A DNA stretch of 63,527 bases, filler included, from Octopus bimaculoides (Eukaryota): NCBI RefSeq assembly GCF_001194135.2. It is 7 parts of 7 records of this genome, joined end to end, with 100 filler letters (N's around TTAATTAATTAA, not from the genome) between each part and the next. Parts side by side here need not be neighbours in the genome. Positions count along the whole stretch, not along the records: positions 20,844 to 51,922 come from NC_069004.1; 6 more parts are not named here. The stretch is one strand, 5' to 3'. How positions within the stretch are numbered: position 1 is the first letter of the stretch; every line of letters starts with the position of its first letter. Of the stretch, positions 7,875 through 51,905 are shown piece after piece. The notes below the pieces were generated by a model, which was not told where the DNA came from, did not search any database, and worked only from the letters and a program-made list of their open reading frames with translations. The translations under genes and the position numbers were made by a program.

Positions 7875-7911
<37 letters not shown>

Positions 7912-7944
7912 ATATATACAGATAGATACACACACACACAGTTG

Positions 7945-8264
7945 TGAGGCGTGTAGCGTAATGGCTACGGGTATTTGGCTAAGGATTGTAAAGTTCGATT
8001 CCCGGTGGCGCATCGTGTTCTCGAGCAAGATACTTTGTTTCACCTTGCTCCAGTTCACTCAGCTGTAGAAATGAGTTGCGACATCACTGGTGTCAAGATG
8101 TATCGGCCTTTGCCTTTCCCTTGGATAACATTGGTGGCGTGGAGAGGGGAGGCTGGTATGCATGGACGACTGCTGGGCTTCTATAAACAGCCTTGCTCGG
8201 ACATGTGCTCCCGAGGGTAACTTTTTACGTGAAATCCCATGGCCATTCATGACCGGAAGGTGTG

Positions 8265-8860: not shown

Positions 8861-9424
8861 TCTCTCGTAATATTTGCTGTTGTTGTTGCTGTTATTCTTA
8901 ATGCCATTGTTCTTCCGCAAATCAACAGCAATTTAAACAAGTGTAATTATTATTTCTATTTAAGATGTCATTAAATCATTATCCCTTTGATGCTTAGAAA
9001 CTTCCAATTTGTTCTTTCTTTCTAATCTAAATTTCTAGAGTTTAAAACCGACGCTTTAATTTTTATATCAGTTTTAAAGCCATTGTTTGCATTACATTCT
9101 GTTATCTATTAAAATGCTGTTATATGTTCTTTCTGTTGTTGCCGTTCTTCCTGCATCTTACGATACTTTGTAATTTACTTGTTACTCATTGTAGAACTAT
9201 TTTACAAATACTATTTTACAATCTATTCTTTTTTTTTTTTTGCCCACCATATATTTACACCGCTCTGTCTGTAACGTTTCATATCAAAGCTTCTAAAATA
9301 GCCCATTCTAAAATTATCAATTATATTTTTACAATACTATATCACGTGTGTGTGACGCAAACATACAAAAGCTTACTCCCTCATAAACCTTGTTTGTCCA
9401 TTAAATAGTGTATACTCACTTAAG

Positions 9425-29835: not shown

Positions 29836-29894
29836 ATGGCTAGTATAGAGGAATACGCTGAGCACCTGTCGGTAAAGTCGAATCTTGGAAGGAT
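29836..29894 (+). CDS. CEP63: CEP63/DEUP1-like gene, coding exon 1 (MASIEEYAEHLSVKSNLGR + phase 2)
   Basis: ATG at 29836, strong donor AT|gtaagt; phase 2 fits the acceptor at 34087 and the recalled phase-2 first intron of vertebrate CEP63. Confidence 0.65.
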
Positions 29895-32999: not shown

Positions 33000-33760
33000 T
33001 CGTGGAAATATTGTTTTGTAGACATCGAAGACGCATATGACCGTATGCTGAATTATGTTTTTCAGAATTTAGGGAGTACTGGGCAACTTCTGGTTACCGT
33101 GAAGTCTTCTTGCAGTAAAAGGCAAATAGTGCCATGTTAAAATCTTTCAACCTGGGTGTTGGACTTCCGCAGGGGTTTGTATTGTCACCTCTCCTTTTCA
33201 TAATTTTTATGAACTTTGATGAACGTGCACAGCCATTGTGGAAGTGATATCACAATAAGTTGATGTAGGACAATAGGCTAATATATGCACAAATGCGTCA
33301 GCTCCAGCATTCGATCCTCAGAAGAGAAGTTGGTCAAAGGAAACTAAATATGCCTTCTTCACTTTGGTTTTGGGCCTATCCCTACCTATGATCATAGATA
33401 TTGGGTACAGATTGAAAGAGTACGATTGCGCATACAAATGTTTGAAATGGGGTTCCTCTAAAGAGTTTCTGGAGTAATATTACTCGACAGGGTGCATAAC
33501 TTTGAGATCAGAGAGTCTCTCCAGGTCAAGCTACTATATTTCCTTACTTAGAGGTCACAGATCCAGTACCCGGACAAGTGATTAGAAAGTCAAAGGAAAG
33601 AATTGCAAGACAAATTCTTCAAGATGAGACAACCAGTAGAAAACCTGGGGCAGGCCATAAATGTAATGGTTGAATAATATCTAAAGTTTCAATAGGTCAT
33701 GCTCGGAAATCCAATCGCAAAGTCTAACGATGGCTATTTCTGATAGGACCCTATGGAGGA
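33000..33760 (+). mobile_element. Decayed RTE-clade LINE (RT and 3' region)
   Basis: VGLPQGFVLSPLLFIIFM and DRVHNFEIRESLQV motifs. Confidence 0.65.
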
Positions 33761-34086: not shown

Positions 34087-34279
34087 AATCTCAGACGAAA
34101 GCATTTTGATGATAGCCTGTAACAAAGAAGTACGGGAGTGCCTTCGCCAGCTCGATATACTGGTTGATGATCGAGAGCTTGACCTGAAGAAACAACTTGT
34201 TGATCTTTATAAGTACTTTACAGAAAGAACGAGACAATGTCAACAAAAGGATTTAACTATTAAGGAGAAAGTTAAGAAG
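34087..34279 (+). CDS. CEP63: CEP63/DEUP1-like gene, coding exon 2 (ISDESILMIACNKEVRECLRQLDILVDD...KEKVKK)
   Basis: Pyrimidine tract + tttcag acceptor; CNKEVRECLRQLDILV aligns with recalled human CEAELQELMKQIDIMV, and the ungapped 54-residue span from the Cys to the donor is the same length. Confidence 0.8.
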
Positions 34280-34374
34280 GTCTGTCACTTTCGTTACCAA
34301 ATTTTCATCTATAATGATTTTATTGTCAACAAGAGTTGTTATATAACAACTCATAGATGTTGGGTACAAACTGT

Positions 34375-38776: not shown

Positions 38777-38872
38777 GTAAAGGTACTTGAATCTCATGTA
38801 CGTCGGATCTCCACAGAGAAAATGGAAACAGACGAGATATACGAGAGAAATCTGTTTGGGTTCAACTCAAAG
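38777..38872 (+). CDS. CEP63: CEP63/DEUP1-like exon 3, 96-nt repeat A (VKVLESHVRRISTEKMETDEIYERNLFGFNSK)
   Basis: taacag acceptor, AAG|gtaaga donor, phase 0-0, open frame. Confidence 0.8.
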
Positions 38873-38920
38873 GTAAGAAATTTGACTTCTCTTTTATTTT
38901 CATTCCCATCAATCTTTCTA

Positions 38921-39100
38921 CGAGGGGGTGCTGAAAAGTTCCTGGTTGCAGGCCCAAACTTCCAAGTTCTTTTACAGAACTTAGGAAAACTGACGGACCG
39001 CTGCAATAAGTGAGAGGGGAATATGTTGGATACAATCATAATTAACTGACCCTCTTGTATTTTCTTTTACCCAAAGCCAGGAACCTTTCAGCTCCCCTCA
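38921..39100. mobile_element. Mariner-type MITE
   Basis: Inverted termini cgagggggtgctgaaaagttcctgg / ccaggaacctttcagctcccctca with TA flanks. Confidence 0.8.
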
Positions 39101-39926
39101 TAGATGTCCAATATCTAAGAAGATAAGCTACAGAGCTATTGACTATATTTTGTCTACCCTTAACCCAAATAAAAGCCCCAGTTTACTCATTTTCCTTCTT
39201 TACCCCACTCGCAGATAAAGAGTAAAGACTAAAATGTTAGAATCTACGTTCTCTATGGTAAACAAACTTACTAGACTCCCCTATTAATTAAATGTACTGC
39301 TGCAACAGAACATCACCACCGTAGACTTTATATTATTGATTACAGTATCAGGAGTTCAAATCTCAACTTATCTGTTGTGTTTTATCAACAAACGTGACAT
39401 GTGTTCAACAACCTATTTATCCTATATAACCTGGATATTCTTTTAGAAAGTCATAATGCTGTGGTATTCATCTTGAGAAAGCATCTCGCATAGGCATATA
39501 GTGCTAAAAAGCACAGGATTATCAGTAGCAAATGTGTATTGTACAATACACATTTTGACGCTTATAAAAAACAAATGTTAATTTGTTTACATTTAGATAC
39601 ACGTAGTTGTCCATTTAGCTATTTAACGTCTAAATGTGTGGCTAAATTTGTCAGCGGGAAGTTTAGCTTAATGGTAAAGAACTCAGCTGCATCTTCGAGG
39701 GACATGGATTCGCGTCCTATTGTCGTTTGTAGACAAATTTCTTCGCTTTGTAAGGATAATTTATTCAGTTTTTCTGCTGTTCTAACGGCAGTTCTGCGTA
39801 CGAAAAAATATCACGTTCTTATTCGTATTGTACAATATACATTTCGATGCTAATGAAAAACAACTGTTTGTTTATATTTATATACATATGTATATAAATA
39901 CATATATATGTTTATATATGCATGTG

Positions 39927-39982
<56 letters not shown>

Positions 39983-41196
39983 CACACACATATATAGAGA
40001 TTCAGGCAAACACATACGCACGTCTCGTTTAACACACGTATCCGCGTACACATCTTCGTACATATACACATACATATACGCACGTGTGTGTGTATATCAC
40101 ATACATATACACACATGTACATGTATGTGCATGTATGAATATGTGTGCATGGATATGCCCGTTTGTGTATGTTGTGTGCGTGTGTATGTCTATATATATG
40201 TGTGTATGTATGTATATATATATGCATGTGTGTGTGTGTTGTTAAACAGCCCTACCTATACAGTGGAAGCAAATAAGATTTCAATTTGAAAACCGCTCTT
40301 AAGCGAGAAACTCACGTTAGACTCACCTTAAAAATAAACACCTGATAACTTTTAAACATCTAATTAAAGATTTTCAGAAAAGCCATTTCTATTCATTTTT
40401 TTAAATATATAAAATTGAATCAAAGATTTTCTCTTTCTTATTCTACTATATATATATATATNNNNNNNNNNNNNNNNNNNNNNNNNNNNNNNNNNNNNNN
40501 NNNNNNNNNNNNNNNNNNNNNNNNNNNNNNNNNNNNNNNNNNNNNNNNNNNNNNNNNNNNNNNNNNNNNNNNNNNNNNNNNNNNNNNNNNNNNNNNNNNN
40601 NNNNNNNNNNNNNNNNNNNNNNNNNNNNNNNNNNNNNNNNNNNNNNNNNNNNNNNNNNNNNNNNNNNNNNNNNNNNNNNNNNNNNNNNNNNNNNNNNNNN
40701 NNNNNNNNNNNNNNNNNNNNNNNNNNNNNNNNNNNNNNNNNNNNNNNNNNNNNNNNNNNNNNNNNNNNNNNNNNNNNNNNNNNNNNNNNNNNNNNNNNNN
40801 NNNNNNNNNNNNNNNNNNNNNNNNNNNNNNNNNNNNNNNNNNNNNNNNNNNNNNNNNNNNNNNNNNNNNNNNNNNNNNNNNNNNNNNNNNNNNNNNNNNN
40901 NNNNNNNNNNNNNNNNNNNNNNNNNNNNNNNNNNNNNNNNNNNNNNNNNNNNNNNNNNNNNNNNNNNNNNNNNNNNNNNNNNNNNNNNNNNNNNNNNNNN
41001 NNNNNNNNNNNNNNNNNNNNNNNNNNNNNNNNNNNNNNNNNNNNNNNNNNNNNNNNNNNNNNNNNNNNNNNNNNNNNNNNNNNNNNNNNNNNNNNNNNNN
41101 NNNNNNNNNNNNNNNNNNNNNNNNNNNNNNNNNNNNNNNNNNNNNNNNNNNNNNNNNNNNNNNNNNNNNNNNNNNNNNNNNNNNNNNNNNNNNNNN

Positions 41197-41229
<33 letters not shown>

Positions 41230-41403
41230 CAAGTTAACTTAATGGTTCAACAAAGAACAATCGATAAAATAAGTAACAGTCTGACATAAGTGCTATAGCC
41301 AGTGTGATTGCTCGCACCCTTGTACCCAGTGCCACAGCTTAGCTGCTGGTCAATGACTGAAACAAGCGAAAGAACAAACAATAATTCATCTTAACTTTAA
41401 CAG

Positions 41404-41499
41404 GTAGCAACACTTCAAAATGAACTAGATCGCCTCACTAAAGAAAAAGAGCACGAAGAAGGGAAGAATGTGATCAGCGTGTCAAATCTCAGGTCAAAT
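41404..41499 (+). CDS. CEP63: CEP63/DEUP1-like exon 4, 96-nt repeat B (VATLQNELDRLTKEKEHEEGKNVISVSNLRSN)
   Basis: taacag acceptor, AAT|gtaagt donor, phase 0-0, open frame. Confidence 0.78.
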
Positions 41500-41944
41500 G
41501 TAAGTAGATTTGGATTAATTCTCATTAATCTTTGTAAAAGCCCATTTACCGTGAGGGTAAATTACTGGGATGTTGACTACGTTTGCATACCCGCAGCCCA
41601 AGTGACAACATCTGTTTTCGACTTTTTATTCTTTACCGCATTTTCAGTTGAAGCAAAGGACTGAACATTAGATTCTAAACTCCCATATTTACTTGTTGCT
41701 GGTGTTACAGAACATTACAACTGTCTTCAGATTATAGATTTTACTCTATTGACTTCATGGTCGGGATTTTAAATCTGTGCATACCCATTGTCTTGTGCGC
41801 ACATATAAGATACAAGAAAAAGTGTTTTTCCCTCAAATTCAAGACAAATAATATGTATGTATGTATGTATGTATGTATGTGTATATGATATGATCGCTAG
41901 CCACTAAATCTTTTTCTATTTTCTCTCCGTTTATTTCTGTGTTC

Positions 41945-41980
41945 CTTTCTGTTGAAGAGTATAGGCTCGAAACGTAAAAG
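41945..41980 (+). ncRNA. Hammerhead-like motif, A6U core variant
   Basis: CUUU CUGUUGA A GAGU auag GCUC GAA ACGU A AAAG; downstream tail homologous to the 61320-61406 copy. Confidence 0.5.
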
Positions 41981-42097
41981 ACTTTCTCATTTCCCGAGCG
42001 TTAAATTAATACTTCTGTTTGTTGTTTACACCACCTGTCTTCGTCTTCTATTTTGTTGTTTTTTTTTGTAAATTCCAACTATATATATATATGTATG

Positions 42098-42185
<88 letters not shown>

Positions 42186-42239
42186 AATGTGCTTTCCACA
42201 GACTATCATATTGTGCACAAAAAGGGTATAATAAATAAC

Positions 42240-43110
42240 TTGCAGTCCATTTTGGGGGACTTCACCTTTTCTGTCCCTGTTGTGAGTAAGAATGTTGAAG
42301 TTGTTGACCGCCTCACTTATTTTCGTCGTGTGATTCATAGTGGCATTAGCTGCGAGTCTGAAGTACTAAAAAGACTTGGACGAGCTGGTACAGGTGTGAT
42401 CTCATTGGACAAAGCTTTTTGGCGCAGCCAATATCTGTGCGAGACATGTCCGGTAAGTTCACCATCATCAGTTCATTGCAGGGTAAGTTTACCGTCGTCA
42501 ATTCACCGCTTTTTGCTGTTGTTTTTTTTAAATAAAATAGTTTCTAACTATTAATGGTGAGATACTATGAATATATTTTCTCAGTAAACTTTCCTCGCAG
42601 TAAAATTTCCTCGTGGTGAATTGACGGCGGTGAACTTACCTGTACTCGTGCAGGAGTAAAAAAGTTCGGGTCTTTAGGGCTCTGGTCCTCCCTGTCCTGC
42701 TCTATAGTTGTGAGACTTGGACACTGTCCAGAGCTCTTGGGAGCTGCCTGAGCTCCTTTGGTGCTACAACGCTTCGCAGGATTATGGATTACCATTGGTC
42801 AGATTTCGCATCCAACCAACGACTCTTCTCAGAAACTAGTATGCATCCTGTTACTTGTATGATTCGGGAGCACCAGCTCAATCTATTTGGTCATGTTGTT
42901 CAATTTTCCAAGTTAGGCCCTGCTTATGTTCTCTTCTTTGAGGATCTGGCTAGGTTGATGGCTCGTGTTGATCGACCACATGGTCACGGCAGGCGGGAGC
43001 ATATCTCACAGAGATAGGAACTGACTAGGACTCTGTTTAACGGTTTGCCCAGGAGGACCTGGGGAAATGCAGACAAACAGTGAATACAGCAAAGTGCTGC
43101 AACAGCACAT
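42240..43110 (+). mobile_element. Decayed RTE LINE interrupted by a MITE of about 190 bp (42452-42641)
   Basis: VEVVDRLTY...ESEVLKRLGRA and MIREHQLNLFGHVVQF motifs; MITE termini ggtaagttcacc/ggtgaacttacc. Confidence 0.65.
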
Positions 43111-43494
43111 GCCCCCACATCTGACCTTCTTCACAGTTTTATAGTTTCCACTTGTAAGGACATCCAGTTGTTTCAACATTCACAGAAATAGAAAGCTTGC
43201 ACGGATATGACGTGCAAGAATTTGTTTCCAATTTAAGTTATTGTGTTCTGTGTTCCACTATAGACTCAACTTGACCAATTCCTTGTGAGGAAAAAGTAAC
43301 AGACGGAAACTGTGCTGGCATTTGTTAGGCATGATTGTCATTATTTAACAACTGCTTTCTACGCTGGCTTGGGTTGCATTGGTTGTCACTGTCTAACTCT
43401 CTTCATATTCTGAGTTACTACCTACTTAGACTGGTTGTAAAACTATATCTCACTTGTATATTCCAATTTTGGCATGGTTTTTACCTCTTGGTGG

Positions 43495-44870
43495 GTAATT
43501 CCGTACGAAATCAATAATTTTATTTTTTTAATTGAAGATGACCGAAACCAATTTCTTTCAAACTTTGCATCCTAAATGGCCTTCATATGAAACCCTTAAA
43601 TATGAAATATTTTTTTACCAAAAAGTGACATTTTTTCGGTTATCTCAGCTAGCTAGAAAACTCTTTTTTTTTTCATTTTAAAGCATTTAAATAGATCTAC
43701 AACTTTTGTTTGGTGTATTTTTTCCTTACATTAAAAATAACTAAGTTGACCTAAAATTTGACCCGTGATCTTTCATAGGTCAAAAGATTCAGTCATCGAT
43801 TTTTTTGAAATTTTATCCAAATATTGCCCTACTTAGTCACAACTCACATAAAAAAATTCATACTGGAATCTCAATGGGAAATATTTTAAATAAATATAAA
43901 CTATAGTGAAAAGTAATGACAAATTATCAAAACTTGCTTACTATTGTAACTATTATCCAGCTCTGCTATGGTCAATGTTAGCAATGCCACTGCCAACACT
44001 TAGAATCAAAGTGTTTGTATCCCATCGCCTAAGGGGCCACTTCTGATAGCTTAGCAGATGAAGCCACATGTCCCATCCTCCCACTTTTGCCTTGCTTTAA
44101 ATGATTAAGTACTTGTCAGATGAAATTCTGAAAGCTTAGAAATTTAATGAGACAATTTTCTTGAAATTGATAATTGTGATGCATTTTTCATTTCTTTTTC
44201 CGTGAAAGCATAATGTTCTTCCTGTAGCAGTACTGGGGTCAAATTTACAAAGGATGTCTAAATAACTCACTGTTAAAACATTTGACTTTCTAGGAACCTG
44301 GAATGATGATGAGGGTCCCTTAGGTTCAAGAAAGATGAGTTTTACTTGCATAGTTTCTGAATATGTTTCTAGAACACAGGCTAACCACCAGTCACCATCG
44401 TAAATTGCAGCTACAAATCCTTTTATATCCTCAAATTGAATAGCATCTTGCATGGAGATTCTAATTTTAATATAATTATCTATTGTAGATATCATTTTTA
44501 CCTTAATTTTTGGAGGTGAGTTTGGGATAAAGCAATGCAACTTTTGTTGCCCCTAGAATTGTCCCTGCATTTCCAAATCTCTTTCTCAAAAAATGCTTTA
44601 AAATGGAAAAAAAGAAATTAGCTTTCTTCCACAAATAGTAGCTGAGATATGACTTCTCAAAGTTATTTAGTAACCGAAAAAATGTCACTTTTTTGAAAAT
44701 TTCAAATGGCCATAACTCAGCAAATATTTGAGTCAGGTAAAAAAAATATTTTATATTTAAAGGTTTCGTATGAAGACCATTTGGCATGCACAGTTTGAAA
44801 GAAATTGGTTTCAGTCTACCTCAGTGCTGGCGTTGATTTTGCATGCCCTTCATGACACCAACTGCTTTAC
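43495..44870 (-). mobile_element. DNA transposon remnant with long inverted termini, retaining a transposase-associated C-terminal fragment
   Basis: About 43538-43690 is inverted-homologous to about 44590-44815; internal ORF 44136-44540 GFVAAIYDGDWWLACVLE...GPSSSF...DPSTATGRT; superfamily (Sola3-like) is a guess. Confidence 0.6.
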
Positions 44871-46410
44871 AGCGTGCACTGGCTTCATTTCATTGTTGCA
44901 CCAATAACAGAAAGGTTGTCATGTCCTCAGTCAGGACCTTTCAACTCTGTGTTGTCTGTGCTCAATCTTCAGCCACTTCCCAGCATCCTCCATATGCAGG
45001 CTACCAATACTTGTATACTACACTTCATTTCTCTCATACCCAGTTTTTTGCTCAGATTATTTGTAATCTAGAATCTAAACACACTAATATTTAGTGGAAT
45101 ATGTTTGTTTTATCTCCTTGTAGCCTTCACAAATCTTCATTTAAGGTATGCACCATCCCAGTTAGAGGTGTGTGCGTGTGTGTGTTTATGTATTTGTATT
45201 TCGTTTATCCGTATTTTTAACACTAGTCTAAAAATTGACACTATATAGTGTCCCTTTATGTCCCATAGCTTAATAGTTCGACAAAGAATGACCAATAAAA
45301 TAAGTAACAAACTGAAAATAGTGCTATAGTCAGTTTGATTGCTCAAACCAATTTGATTGCTCAAACCCTTGTACTTTATCATGCAAACTTCCCCTCACTC
45401 GGAGAAAGAAAAACCTTGTTATTAACAGAGGTAGTATCTTCTAGAACTTTTTCCAAATTGTTCTTACCCTGGCTACTATATTTTCTGAACACTCGCCTCC
45501 TCTACTAATTATTTCACCTTGGTAATTACTTCTAGTGAGCCAGCTAGGTATTTAAAAGTATCCATTTCCAGTCTGCTCTTAGTGCATATTGCTCGTAAAA
45601 ATCTGCCACATACAATGCTTACTTTCACGGTTAGTCTGCCTGTGATTCCACTACTTCTCTTGCGTGTTCATCACATTAAGAACAGCATATAAAGTTCCTA
45701 CCTACTTCTTCTCTGCCTCAAGCAAGGCCATTTTCCTGATGACACTGGAATTCTGTTTCCTTTCCTACTTATTTAACACCTTAGTCCTTTCTAAAGCTTT
45801 TAAGGCCTTTCTGTCCTAAAGCTTTCAGTCATAATGTTTTCAGTCATAAATCCTAGATTTTGCTTCTATACCTGGAATTTCTATTTTAATTCTACCACAT
45901 TCAATAATAAGAGCTAGGTCATCAGCATATGGGAATTTCCTTGGGTAGCTGGTCTTAAATGCTTCTGTGATGGCCTGTAAACAATGATCAATTAGTTGGA
46001 GCTGCAGACTGGGCTGTGATGAACCCATATCTTCATACCAAAATCATTACAAAACTCTATTTTGAAATTCACTTTATTACTTCTCAGCCCCCAAAAGCCA
46101 TTCATGTACATCTAGTTTCCTTAGTAGCTGTGCATATACGTACACATACATGTGCATTGTTGTGTCTTATGTTTTTGTTAACTTCTATCTAAAACTGATG
46201 CTGGTAATGTTGTAACGATTTTGTCCAGTACCCTATCAATATTCAACAAATAAGAGTTGATTTATCTAAATACCAGAGTGAAATATGTATGGGGATAAAT
46301 CTAATACTCTATAGTCCTTGAAGGTGGTGCAACAGTATAGCAGCATGGCTGCTGTGCAAGGACTAAAACCAATAAATTAACATAGAAATATATTTCAACT
46401 TTTTTGACAG

Positions 46411-46506
46411 GTCCAGTCACTTTACAATCAAATAAATTGGCTCGTATCTGAGAAAGAGAAAATAGATGAGATGAATGTCACACAAATGTCCGAACTCCAT
46501 TCACAA
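46411..46506 (+). CDS. CEP63: CEP63/DEUP1-like exon 5, 96-nt repeat C (VQSLYNQINWLVSEKEKIDEMNVTQMSELHSQ)
   Basis: tttttgacag acceptor, CAA|gtaagt donor, phase 0-0, open frame. Confidence 0.78.
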
Positions 46507-46699
46507 GTAAGTAAATTTGATAGCATTCTTTTCTTATCTAATATTACTATGATTGTTTATTGATGCTCATTAGATGTGTGGGATGGTTACTGACATTCAT
46601 GCTAGTGTCCTTCAAGGAGGCACTCTGGTTCTATACCTGTTTATGATATAGCTGGATTAGTCTTAAGTATATCCATTGACATCAACAAAGATCATGAAT

Positions 46700-47460
46700 T
46701 TACACTTCAGAGAGCTAGAAGTAGAAAACAACCAGCAGTGAAAATATCAGATGCTGACTATGTCGATGATCTTAGTATGCTTGGAGATGACAAAGAACTA
46801 GCAAAGGAAATGTTACATGTATTGAAGGCTGCAGCTGTGCAGTTAGGACAATATGTCAATGCCAGTAAGACTGAATGTGTGGGCTGTGATGTAACAGGGG
46901 ATATGTGTGCTCTGAATGGCGCCGATCTGAGTTGATGACTTTACTGACCTAGGAATCAAGATTGTCTCAATAGAAAAGGATGTCCAGGTAAGGGCTGTGT
47001 AAGTATGGAATGCCTCAGACAGACTCAGGATTATATGGAGATCCCACATTCCTGATAACATGAAGAGAGGTTTCTTCAAAGCAATTGTTGAATCTCTATG
47101 GCTCTTCAGCATGGACACAGAACAAGAGACTTGAAAAGAAGCTTGACAGTACATACACAAAATACTTTGTGCCGTTAGTTTTCAATCTTTCTTGGCAGTA
47201 ACACCCTACACAGCAACAACTGTTAGCAGTCCTCTTACCATCACCTCATTAATCAGAGAAAGAACGCATTATGCAAGACACTGCTGGACAGGTAAAGATG
47301 AAATATCTTGCAGTCTCCTCTGGAAGCTCATGCATGGGTAGTCGAAGAGGAGCATACGTCAATCAACTTGTGGAAGACACTGGAAATCAATTTGAGCATT
47401 TGAAGACTGCTGTGAAAGATCAGGACATCTGGTGTAGAAGGGTTGCATTGGTCTGAGTGA
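46700..47460 (+). mobile_element. Decayed LINE RT fragment (RTE-related)
   Basis: ISDADYVDDLSML...GQYVNASKTE (YADD-like motif). Confidence 0.7.
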
Positions 47461-47586
47461 GATGCCTCACCAGATAAACAGAGAAACTAGTGTTGTTTAA
47501 GCTGTATCTCTGTTTTATGTTATAACTGTTTAATGAGCAGTGTTCAATAAAAGATAGAGAGTGAAATAAGTACTAGAGTTAAAAAC

Positions 47587-47908
47587 CAGTGGTTTTCAAC
47601 TATTTTTTTATCTATGGACCCCCTTGATTGCTATCTTTTTCTGGTGGACCCCCATAGCCATTAATTTTATAGATTCTTCTTTCCTATTCTGTTCATCACA
47701 TATTCGCTTGTTTAGGCTGAACTATATAAAGCATTTGAGAAAGAAACCTAGCTGTTTCTTGCAATAAATATACTTTAAGCAAAATATTTTCATGGACCTT
47801 TAGAATAATATAAAAGTGAGTCCCCAATTTACTGTTTTGCTAATGCTGACCCCCAAAAATCTTATATGGACCCCCACGGGTCACATGGACTCCGGTTGAG
47901 AACCACTG
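47587..47908. mobile_element. hAT-type MITE
   Basis: Termini cagtggttttcaac / gttgagaaccactg. Confidence 0.75.
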
Positions 47909-47996
47909 GTCCAAACACTTGAATGTACTTCTCCAACATGATTGTAGTCCAATAACAAAAAACAATAAAAGTATGTAATTTAAATTTGTTTGGCAG

Positions 47997-48092
47997 ATAG
48001 CAACAATCCAGCTTAAAATCGAACTGGCCGTTTCAGAAGAACAGCAAGCAGCGGAGAGGTTTAAGACGCAAGTATCTTTATTCAAGACAAAG
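47997..48092 (+). CDS. CEP63: CEP63/DEUP1-like exon 6, 96-nt repeat D (IATIQLKIELAVSEEQQAAERFKTQVSLFKTK)
   Basis: tttgtttggcag acceptor, AAG|gtaagt donor, phase 0-0, open frame. Confidence 0.78.
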
Positions 48093-51297: not shown

Positions 51298-51441
51298 TTT
51301 AGGCAATTGAACGCAATGTATGAGCAACTTCGTTACATATTCAAGCAGGAACTACACCAGACGAACGAGGCTGTCTTAAATGCTGATACACGAATGGCAG
51401 AAAGGAAACGGCAAATTCAAGATCTTTCAGAAAAGTTAGAG
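51298..51441 (+). CDS. CEP63: CEP63/DEUP1-like exon 7 (FRQLNAMYEQLRYIFKQEL...RQIQDLSEKLE); next exon not found in the window
   Basis: Pyrimidine tract + tttcag acceptor, GAG|gtagtg donor; YEQLR and QIQDLSEKLE parallel recalled human YEKLQ and EIERLTAKIE. Confidence 0.8.
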
Positions 51442-51597
51442 GTAGTGACTTATGTTCTGTCAAGAGAAAACTCATGTCACCCACCTATCCCTCTCCTTCT
51501 CTCCTCCTCTCCCTCCCTCTCATTCTCTCTCTCTCTCTTTTTCTCCCCCCTTCTCTCCCCTCTCTCCCTCCTTCTCAATCTCTCGCATTCTCTCTCT

Positions 51598-51905
51598 CTC
51601 ACTCAAGTTCCAGAGGAGTGCGATGTGATCATTTTCAAGTACTGGGGGTGGTTTGTGTTCCCACCAGTTTTTATCATGGGGCAAGTCCAGGTTTTTGCAT
51701 ATTACCCAGTGAATATATTGTGCAGCTCTATCATGCCTGTTGAGATACTCTGTAGGCGCAAGCAAACTGCACATGGAGACAACATGATCAATGGTCTCAT
51801 TTTGTTGTAGGCATATACGACATAATGGGAAGCTGCCGTTCTTTAATATGTTGGCCTGGTAGTTCTTTGTAGGTAGGCATTGATCTTGGGCTGCTATGAT
51901 AAACC
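51598..51905 (-). mobile_element. R4/Dong-like non-LTR retrotransposon fragment
   Basis: CSLLAPTEYLNRHDRAAQYIHWVICKNLDLPHDKNWWEHKPPPVLEND, as recalled for the RHD motif region of R4-clade elements. Confidence 0.75.

Follow-up and report, generated by a model that had tools for sequence, protein, structure and literature searches.

The stretch of DNA analysed here (the window, 63,527 nucleotides (nt) joined from parts of the Octopus bimaculoides genome) carries, in the part taken from NC_069004.1 (positions 20,844 to 51,922, hereafter the piece), several exons of LOC106878640. This CEP63-like gene, called A below, is the middle member of the tandem array B-A-C. Four exons of A, referred to as units, arose by tandem duplication of a single ancient 96-nt phase 0-0 exon of the CEP63 family and have since diverged. 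The O. bimaculoides locus (L001, from CM046624.1 of GCA_001194135.2; window coordinate = L001 coordinate + 19835) was compared with gene A of O. sinensis (L002), gene B of O. sinensis (L005, CM016882.1:19444067-19503350), the O. vulgaris locus (L006, OX597837.1) and two outgroup loci, the CEP63-like genes of Argonauta hians (L003, GAB1609151.1) and of the chiton Liolophura sinensis (L004). The O. sinensis and O. vulgaris loci are gapless in the unit region, whereas the O. bimaculoides locus is rich in gaps.

The first coding exon of A (29836..29894, 59 nt; all exons of A given here lie on the + strand) was located by tblastn with the RefSeq protein XP_014783407.1 (P0001). It carries the ATG, encodes MASIEEYAEHLSVKSNLGR plus 2 nt, ends in phase 2 and has the donor GAT/gtaagt. 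Exon b (34087..34279, 193 nt, phase 2 to 0) encodes the conserved CEP63 N-terminal segment (ACNKEVRECLRQLDILVDDRELDLKKQL...), which aligns with the start of the Pfam CEP63 profile and with residues 22-90 of the Argonauta CEP63-like protein. The four units follow, each 96 nt long and in phase 0-0: unit 1 at 38777..38872 (VKVLESHVRRISTEKMETDEIYERNLFGFNSK; orthologs L002 7887-7982 and L006 14130-14225), unit 2 at 41404..41499 (VATLQNELDRLTKEKEHEEGKNVISVSNLRSN; L002 9952-10047 and L006 16208-16303), unit 3 at 46411..46506 (VQSLYNQINWLVSEKEKIDEMNVTQMSELHSQ; L002 10831-10926 and L006 17091-17186) and unit 4 at 47997..48092 (IATIQLKIELAVSEEQQAAERFKTQVSLFKTK; L002 12628-12723 and L006 19215-19310). 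Exon c (51298..51441, 144 nt, phase 0-0; FRQLNAMYEQLRYIFKQEL...) is the counterpart of the segment found after the single unit of standard CEP63 (AAELRSEHERLHKTFLRKM in Argonauta). Joined together, 29836-29894, 34087-34279, the four units and 51298-51441 give an open frame of 780 nt equal to residues 1-260 of XP_014783407.1. All four units are thus already joined in this public RefSeq model of LOC106878640, which is 285 amino acids (aa) long.

Four copies of a CEP63-family exon

The units lie at exactly the coordinates given in the initial annotation of the window, open in phase 0 and with canonical splice sites, each being preceded by a T-rich tract and CAG and followed by GTAAG. They also carry the residues that it had listed as shared, namely V or I at position 1, L or I at position 4, hydrophobic residues at 8 and 11, E14, and K15 (E in unit 4). 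The pattern of a 96-nt open reading frame (ORF) bordered by AG and GT is common in itself, with 28 such segments on the + strand of the piece and 13 on the - strand; among them, only these four combine consensus splice sites with mutual resemblance. Aligned in register, the four units reach a BLOSUM62 sum of 169, as compared with -107 +/- 28 for residue shuffles (0 of 20000 shuffles reach 169), and this alignment is the single best of 32768 circular-shift combinations. At the nucleotide level, units are identical at 45-55 of 96 positions in register and at no more than 40 of 96 when shifted. About 40 nt of intron on either side of the units are also recognisably homologous among the copies, which indicates that the duplicated segment exceeded the exon. 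Adjacent exons that resemble each other above chance, together with a single copy in outgroup orthologs, characterize tandem exon duplication, and both are found here.

Searching with a hidden Markov model (HMM) of the unit gave four copies, and no more, for O. bimaculoides and likewise for O. sinensis and O. vulgaris; a scan of the readable introns of these three loci added none. The exons follow the same order in the three species and their AG/GT borders are intact. An assembly gap (40462..41196) lies within the O. bimaculoides intron between units 1 and 2; since it is intronic and the flanking phase 0-0 exons have their own AG and GT, it does not affect the reading frame. The same intron is gapless in O. 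sinensis (1969 nt) and O. vulgaris (1982 nt) and contains no fifth unit. Other gaps of the O. bimaculoides locus could in principle conceal copies, although four is the exact number in both gapless species. Units 2 and 3 are separated by 4911 nt of intron in O. bimaculoides as compared with 783 nt in O. sinensis, owing to two O. bimaculoides-specific insertions of ~3.75 kb (42397-46146) and 366 nt (41816-42181). The ORFs of the ~3.75-kb insertion gave no Pfam match, and it may thus be a non-autonomous repeat.

A single exon occupies the place of the array in the outgroups. The Argonauta CEP63-like gene has one 96-nt phase 0-0 exon (L003 11670-11765) between its N-terminal exon and an exon encoding 'ERLHKTF', the chiton gene has one at the same position (L004 5132-5227), and octopus paralog C has one 96-nt phase 0-0 unit (L006 46262-46357). 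By this comparison, the ancestral state is a single 96-nt phase 0-0 exon. The initial annotation had proposed that one exon was quadruplicated, and had suggested looking for four such exons in outgroup molluscs as a possible refutation; the single copies of Argonauta, the chiton and paralog C agree with the proposal. The chiton protein scores 186 bits on the Pfam CEP63 profile and has the CEP152-binding coiled coil, and the segment 'VGMLHQQVEE' of the human CEP63 chain (PDB 9i7q) aligns with the first residues of its 96-nt exon, in a comparison made at the protein level only; this agrees with the 32-aa human exon that the initial annotation had placed here. In both Argonauta (L003 4219-7680, - strand) and the chiton (L004 1-1263, - strand), a COMM-domain gene lies head-to-head upstream of the CEP63-like gene, a conserved microsynteny that supports their orthology. 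Upstream of the octopus array, within the available flanks, tblastx for this gene gave low-complexity noise only.

Family membership of A itself rests on several searches. CEP63 (PF17045) is the only Pfam family found for P0001 at E < 0.01 (26.3 bits, E 7.8e-6, residues 30-156 against profile positions 3-128); the Argonauta protein scores 40.7 bits and the Logan protein P0006 78.8. A phmmer search of 1.84 billion representatives returned six matches at E <= 0.001, all from the CEP63 family and none unrelated, including the Argonauta 'centrosomal protein of 63 kDa-like' (E 9.3e-12) and P0006 (E 9.4e-6). The O. vulgaris ortholog of A is 25% identical to the Argonauta protein over 424 aa in BLASTP (E 3e-27), and A shares with the Argonauta and chiton genes and with paralog C an exon structure in which 96-nt phase 0-0 sequence separates the N-terminal exon from a 'YE.L...F' exon. 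Human CEP63 is found at the centrosome and binds CEP57 via its N-terminal part and CEP152 via its C-terminus (PMC11194501, PMC10336005); the units of A lie in the N-terminal part of the protein. The sequence relationships indicate that A is CEP63-like, a fast-evolving tandem paralog of the Octopus lineage and not the standard CEP63, so that its earlier description as a CEP63/DEUP1-like protein is right as to the family and needs amending as to the gene.

Further searches added little. The ten longest ORFs of the piece gave no match in a Pfam scan, and no protein from Logan (transcriptome-derived assemblies) matched A itself. Protein searches based on word indexing, queried with the family alignment or the Argonauta protein and capped at 8000 candidates, yielded few relatives; they were dominated by coiled-coil and acidic low-complexity words, so that missing cephalopod homologs are uninformative there. 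A literature search returned no papers on CEP63 in octopus, LOC106878640 or PDB 9i7q.

The B-A-C array and its gene models

Paralog B (XP_036368982.1 in O. sinensis, where it is named 'RB1-inducible coiled-coil protein 1-like'; XP_014784391.1 in O. bimaculoides) lies directly upstream of A in O. sinensis, on the same strand. It also has four units (L005 10001-10096, 10509-10604, 12294-12392 and 13404-13499), of 96, 96, 99 and 96 nt, the third encoding 33 aa, and their splice sites are of the same style as those of the A units. In O. vulgaris, A is followed downstream by paralog C (L006 42758-42958, 46262-46357, 50952-51080 and 59192-59281). Its terminal exon encodes ...RDWAGNFSKELLYIRHNTQITIQRYINSL followed by a stop, 52% identical to the Argonauta CEP63 C-terminus, and tblastn with the C-termini of the Argonauta, chiton and P0006 proteins located the CEP152-binding motif only at the end of C (L006 59192-59278, E 4e-6). 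As C combines one unit with a standard C-terminal exon, it looks like the standard copy, and B and A look like derived duplicates. Each of A, B and C is nearer to the Argonauta protein than to the other two, and the Argonauta locus has no extra copy within 10 kb on either side.

Because the four-unit array is common to A and B, it is probably older than A, and the quadruplication would thus have preceded the duplication that separated the two genes. The pairing of unit 1 of A with unit 1 of B is clear (score 61) and extends to shared intron flanks. A and B also share a conserved stretch of ~55 nt at the start of the intron that follows exon b (ttttcatctataa[at]gattttattgt[ct]aacaagag; window 34280-34340, L005 ~7885-7940), despite a protein identity of only ~25% between their exons. 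This conserved intron start may be an intronic splicing element.

The public model of A is imperfect at its 3' end. The final exon of XP_014783407.1 (FSYETTDRIRTKLLKEVSTLDDLFN and a stop; L001 33755-33835) lies outside the piece, past a gap, and matches intronic sequence in O. sinensis (L002 16581-16688 and 17308-17385 were compared). The true next exon has been identified in O. sinensis; in O. bimaculoides it was probably lost to the gap right after the piece, so that the 285 aa of the RefSeq entry probably represent either an incomplete protein or a short isoform. Further downstream exons of the O. sinensis and O. vulgaris genes find their match in a second O. bimaculoides model (L001 41219-43290) past a 5-kb gap, which indicates that A of O. 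bimaculoides was split and truncated by the assembly. Just 3' of exon c (51470-51600), the frame stays open through a CT-rich run encoding a Ser/Leu/Pro-rich low-complexity segment (…PPIPLLLSSSPSLSFSLSLFFSPLLSPLSLLL…); this is an intronic simple repeat and not coding evidence. Upstream of exon b, in the intron that follows the first coding exon, lies a reverse transcriptase remnant of the long interspersed nuclear element (LINE) type (GLPQGFVLSPLLFIIFM..., window ~33161-33260, + frame), which is also present in O. vulgaris (L006 ~9050-9170). A weak match to the CEP63 C-terminus 5' of exon b (L001 13377) was rejected as a LINE reverse-transcriptase remnant.

In O. sinensis, the model XP_036368983.1 begins at an out-of-frame ATG inside unit exon 2 (L002 10001-10054), and its frame is restored via a GT located 4 nt downstream of the orthologous donor; read in the proper frame, this exon forms a complete 96-nt unit. 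The O. sinensis assembly, unlike those of O. bimaculoides and O. vulgaris, has a second copy, 1.75 kb downstream, of the end of exon b (~60 nt) and ~200 nt of the adjoining intron (L002 7070-7330). This duplication, which is either an assembly error or a recent event, may explain the N-terminal truncation of XP_036368983.1.

Splicing and maintenance of the units

Each 32-residue unit has conserved hydrophobic positions at 1, 4, 8, 11, 22, 26 and 29, followed by position 1 of the next unit, whereas positions 15 and 18 are polar (E14 and K15 fall there). The core spacing 3-4-3-(4-3-4)-4-3-4 corresponds to three heptads and one hendecad (a stutter), and the Fourier peak of hydrophobicity over the 128-residue array lies at 3.556, or 32/9. 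The heptad discontinuity that the initial annotation had deduced from the length of 32 residues is therefore present once per unit. As it is built into the ancestral unit, units can be chained without loss of register. An AlphaFold2 monomer model of A (mean predicted local distance difference test 79, predicted template modelling score 0.28) has one helix at 20-134 and another at 141-284, running through the array. The sole predicted helix break is of low confidence and affects EGKNVI in unit 2, whose glycine is present in O. bimaculoides and absent from O. sinensis.

These features suggest that each exon would encode one α-helical coiled-coil module of 32 residues. If splicing normally joins all four in series, as the NCBI models have it, the part of the N-terminal rod that links the CEP63 N-terminal segment to the remainder of the protein would gain 96 residues (~14 nm if the coiled coil is continuous). 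Skipping would be feasible as well: all 16 inclusion combinations stay open, in line with the earlier suggestion that the symmetric phase permits skipping in frame. We consider that serial inclusion of all four units is probably the main form. Four units are joined in XP_014783407.1 (A) and in XP_036368982.1 (B of O. sinensis), and three in the truncated models XP_014784391.1 and XP_036368983.1.

Several observations weigh against the view of A as a CEP63-family gene whose four related units are joined in one protein. The serial NCBI models are computational predictions, and in O. vulgaris the model of A (CAI9740080.1) includes unit 2 alone and that of B (CAI9740079.1) unit 1 alone, in an annotation that drew on Iso-Seq, RNA-seq, protein alignments and ab initio predictions (PMC10700109). 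The Pfam CEP63 score of A lies under the curated cut-off of 33 bits. No CEP152-binding C-terminal motif (PF25771, CC_CEP152-bind) was detected by tblastn in the A or B regions, the 3' end of A being undefined owing to gaps and a fused model, and A being fast-evolving. The correspondence of units 2 and 4 between A and B is supported mainly via the intron flanks and that of unit 3 is ambiguous, so that parallel expansion or gene conversion is possible. Finally, the amino-acid sequence of the units is barely constrained. The comparison of O. bimaculoides with O. sinensis gives 48 differences in 384 nt and a ratio of non-synonymous to synonymous substitution rates (dN/dS) of 1.42, not significantly different from 1, and the exons diverge more (0.125) than well-aligned intron blocks (0.089).

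A serious rival to serial inclusion, which we nevertheless regard as the less likely of the two, is that only one unit enters each mRNA, giving a protein of standard length with up to four variants of the 32-residue segment. The units have every property by which candidate mutually exclusive exons are recognized, being adjacent, homologous and of the same length and phase (PMC3228551), and each is about as similar to the single Argonauta unit as to its sister units. The single unit in both O. vulgaris models, from an annotation that included Iso-Seq, also favours one-at-a-time use. These models nevertheless look unreliable: all four A units are intact in the O. vulgaris genome despite the single-unit model, CAI9740080.1 fuses A and C, and the other model skips the conserved exon c. 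Moreover, four NCBI models join units serially, and joint inclusion keeps the frame (all units being 96 nt and phase 0-0), so that nothing in the sequence enforces exclusivity. Steric hindrance would not do so either, as the introns of the array are 783-4911 nt long and thus at least 783 nt. The unit donors are near-perfect GTAAGT, and that of exon b is GTCTGT.

An RNA structure imposing exclusivity was also considered. The candidate docking/selector pairing, between 'ACCAAATTT' ~17 nt into the intron after exon b and the complementary 'AAATTTGGT' just past the unit donors, was rejected on the basis of RNAduplex. The pairing had no energetic advantage over 400 random intron windows in A of O. 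bimaculoides, A and B of O. sinensis or A of O. vulgaris; no competing structure for exclusivity was found at these four loci, and B has not retained the docking site. Residual homology of the duplicated intron flanks is the better reading of the shared 'gtaagtaaatttgg...'.

A more elaborate alternative, which we find rather doubtful, would turn the array into a set of combinatorial cassettes, with tissue-specific inclusion of one to four modules setting the length of the N-terminal rod in steps of ~4.7 nm. A and B would then be Octopus-specific CEP63 paralogs, independent of vertebrate DEUP1, maybe without CEP152 binding, and under positive selection, for instance in sperm or multiciliated cells. 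Rod-length tuning by splicing, which the initial annotation had raised, is speculation; positive selection on A is possible.

It is quite improbable that a single unit is a real exon, the others being decaying pseudo-exons that predictors include because they are open. The dN/dS of about 1 or more and the excess of exon over intron divergence are what such decay would leave, and it would be no great coincidence if 384 nt were still stop-free after 48 substitutions (P = 0.12). However, there are no indels in these 384 nt of four exons, as compared with 7.5 expected at the intronic rate (P ~0.001), and canonical splice sites are retained in three species. The seven core positions are hydrophobic in 50 of 56 cases across the eight A and B units, as compared with 42 of 200 elsewhere (p 5e-21), despite ~50% nucleotide identity. 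Retention of frame, splice sites and core positions argues against dead pseudo-exons. An in-frame, coiled-coil-competent module has been maintained in every copy, in three Octopus species and two paralogs. The earlier proposal that the diverged copies are under selection is thus borne out for length, frame and core positions, but not for the amino-acid sequence.

An assembly artefact, in the form of a collapsed or duplicated segment near draft-genome gaps, could be suspected from the many gaps of the O. bimaculoides locus and the local duplication of the exon b end in O. sinensis, but it is effectively refuted, as the copies differ at about half of their nucleotides and as three independent assemblies, of which two lack gaps in this region, show them in one and the same order.

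Comparison with known systems

Like the standard CEP63 of human, Argonauta and Liolophura, A has an N-terminal segment of the form C-x-x-E-L/V-x-E-x-x-x-Q-I/L-D-I/V-x-V. As in the Argonauta and chiton genes, this is followed by a 32-residue module from a 96-nt phase 0-0 exon and then by a Y-E/D-x-L-x-x-x-F segment, and the protein is predicted to be an all-helical coiled coil. In contrast to standard CEP63, A has four modules instead of one, scores under the Pfam cut-off (26.3 against 33 bits), has no CEP152-binding end that we could find, and evolves at a dN/dS of 1 or more. The new features are the four-module architecture in the CEP63 family, present in two members of an Octopus tandem array, very fast sequence evolution and the failure to detect a CEP152-binding end in A or B. 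The growth of rods by duplication of symmetric exons and the four-exon gene model in RefSeq were already known.

Octopus thus possesses a tandem family of rapidly evolving CEP63-like genes beside a standard-looking copy, independent of the vertebrate split between CEP63 and DEUP1. DEUP1 (CCDC67) is described as a CEP63 paralog in two reviews (PMC4926731, PMC5839779). Like DEUP1, A and B of octopus are lineage-specific duplicates of CEP63 and could have become specialized in centriole biogenesis, although their origin is independent, in the Octopus lineage and not in vertebrates. DEUP1 keeps CEP152 binding and, to our knowledge, no multiplied N-terminal module is known for it. If the octopus paralogs do act at centrioles or in sperm, they would provide a natural test of the effect of rod length on a centriolar scaffold.

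Tandem exon duplication is common, affecting ~10% of animal genes (PMC9013439). The units resemble the mutually exclusive clusters of tropomyosin and Dscam in being adjacent homologous exons of identical length and phase derived from one ancestor (PMC9013439). Unlike in those clusters, no exclusivity mechanism based on frame, steric block or RNA structure is visible, and the predicted models are mostly serial.

A further parallel is found in rod and repeat proteins. Nebulin, proteins with spectrin-type repeats and collagen, with its 54-bp exons, have grown by exon duplication. In these proteins as in octopus A, the exon corresponds to a structural module and the symmetric phase lets copy number vary in frame; the octopus module differs in being a 32-residue coiled coil with a stutter and not a folded repeat domain. 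The array suggests how a coiled-coil scaffold can grow: since each exon is a 32-residue module with its own register shift, adding or skipping one spares both the reading frame and the hydrophobic seam. Overall, the units of A represent a modest evolutionary observation, a real and fairly ordinary case of rod-protein growth by exon duplication of the kind known from nebulin, spectrin-type repeats and collagen.

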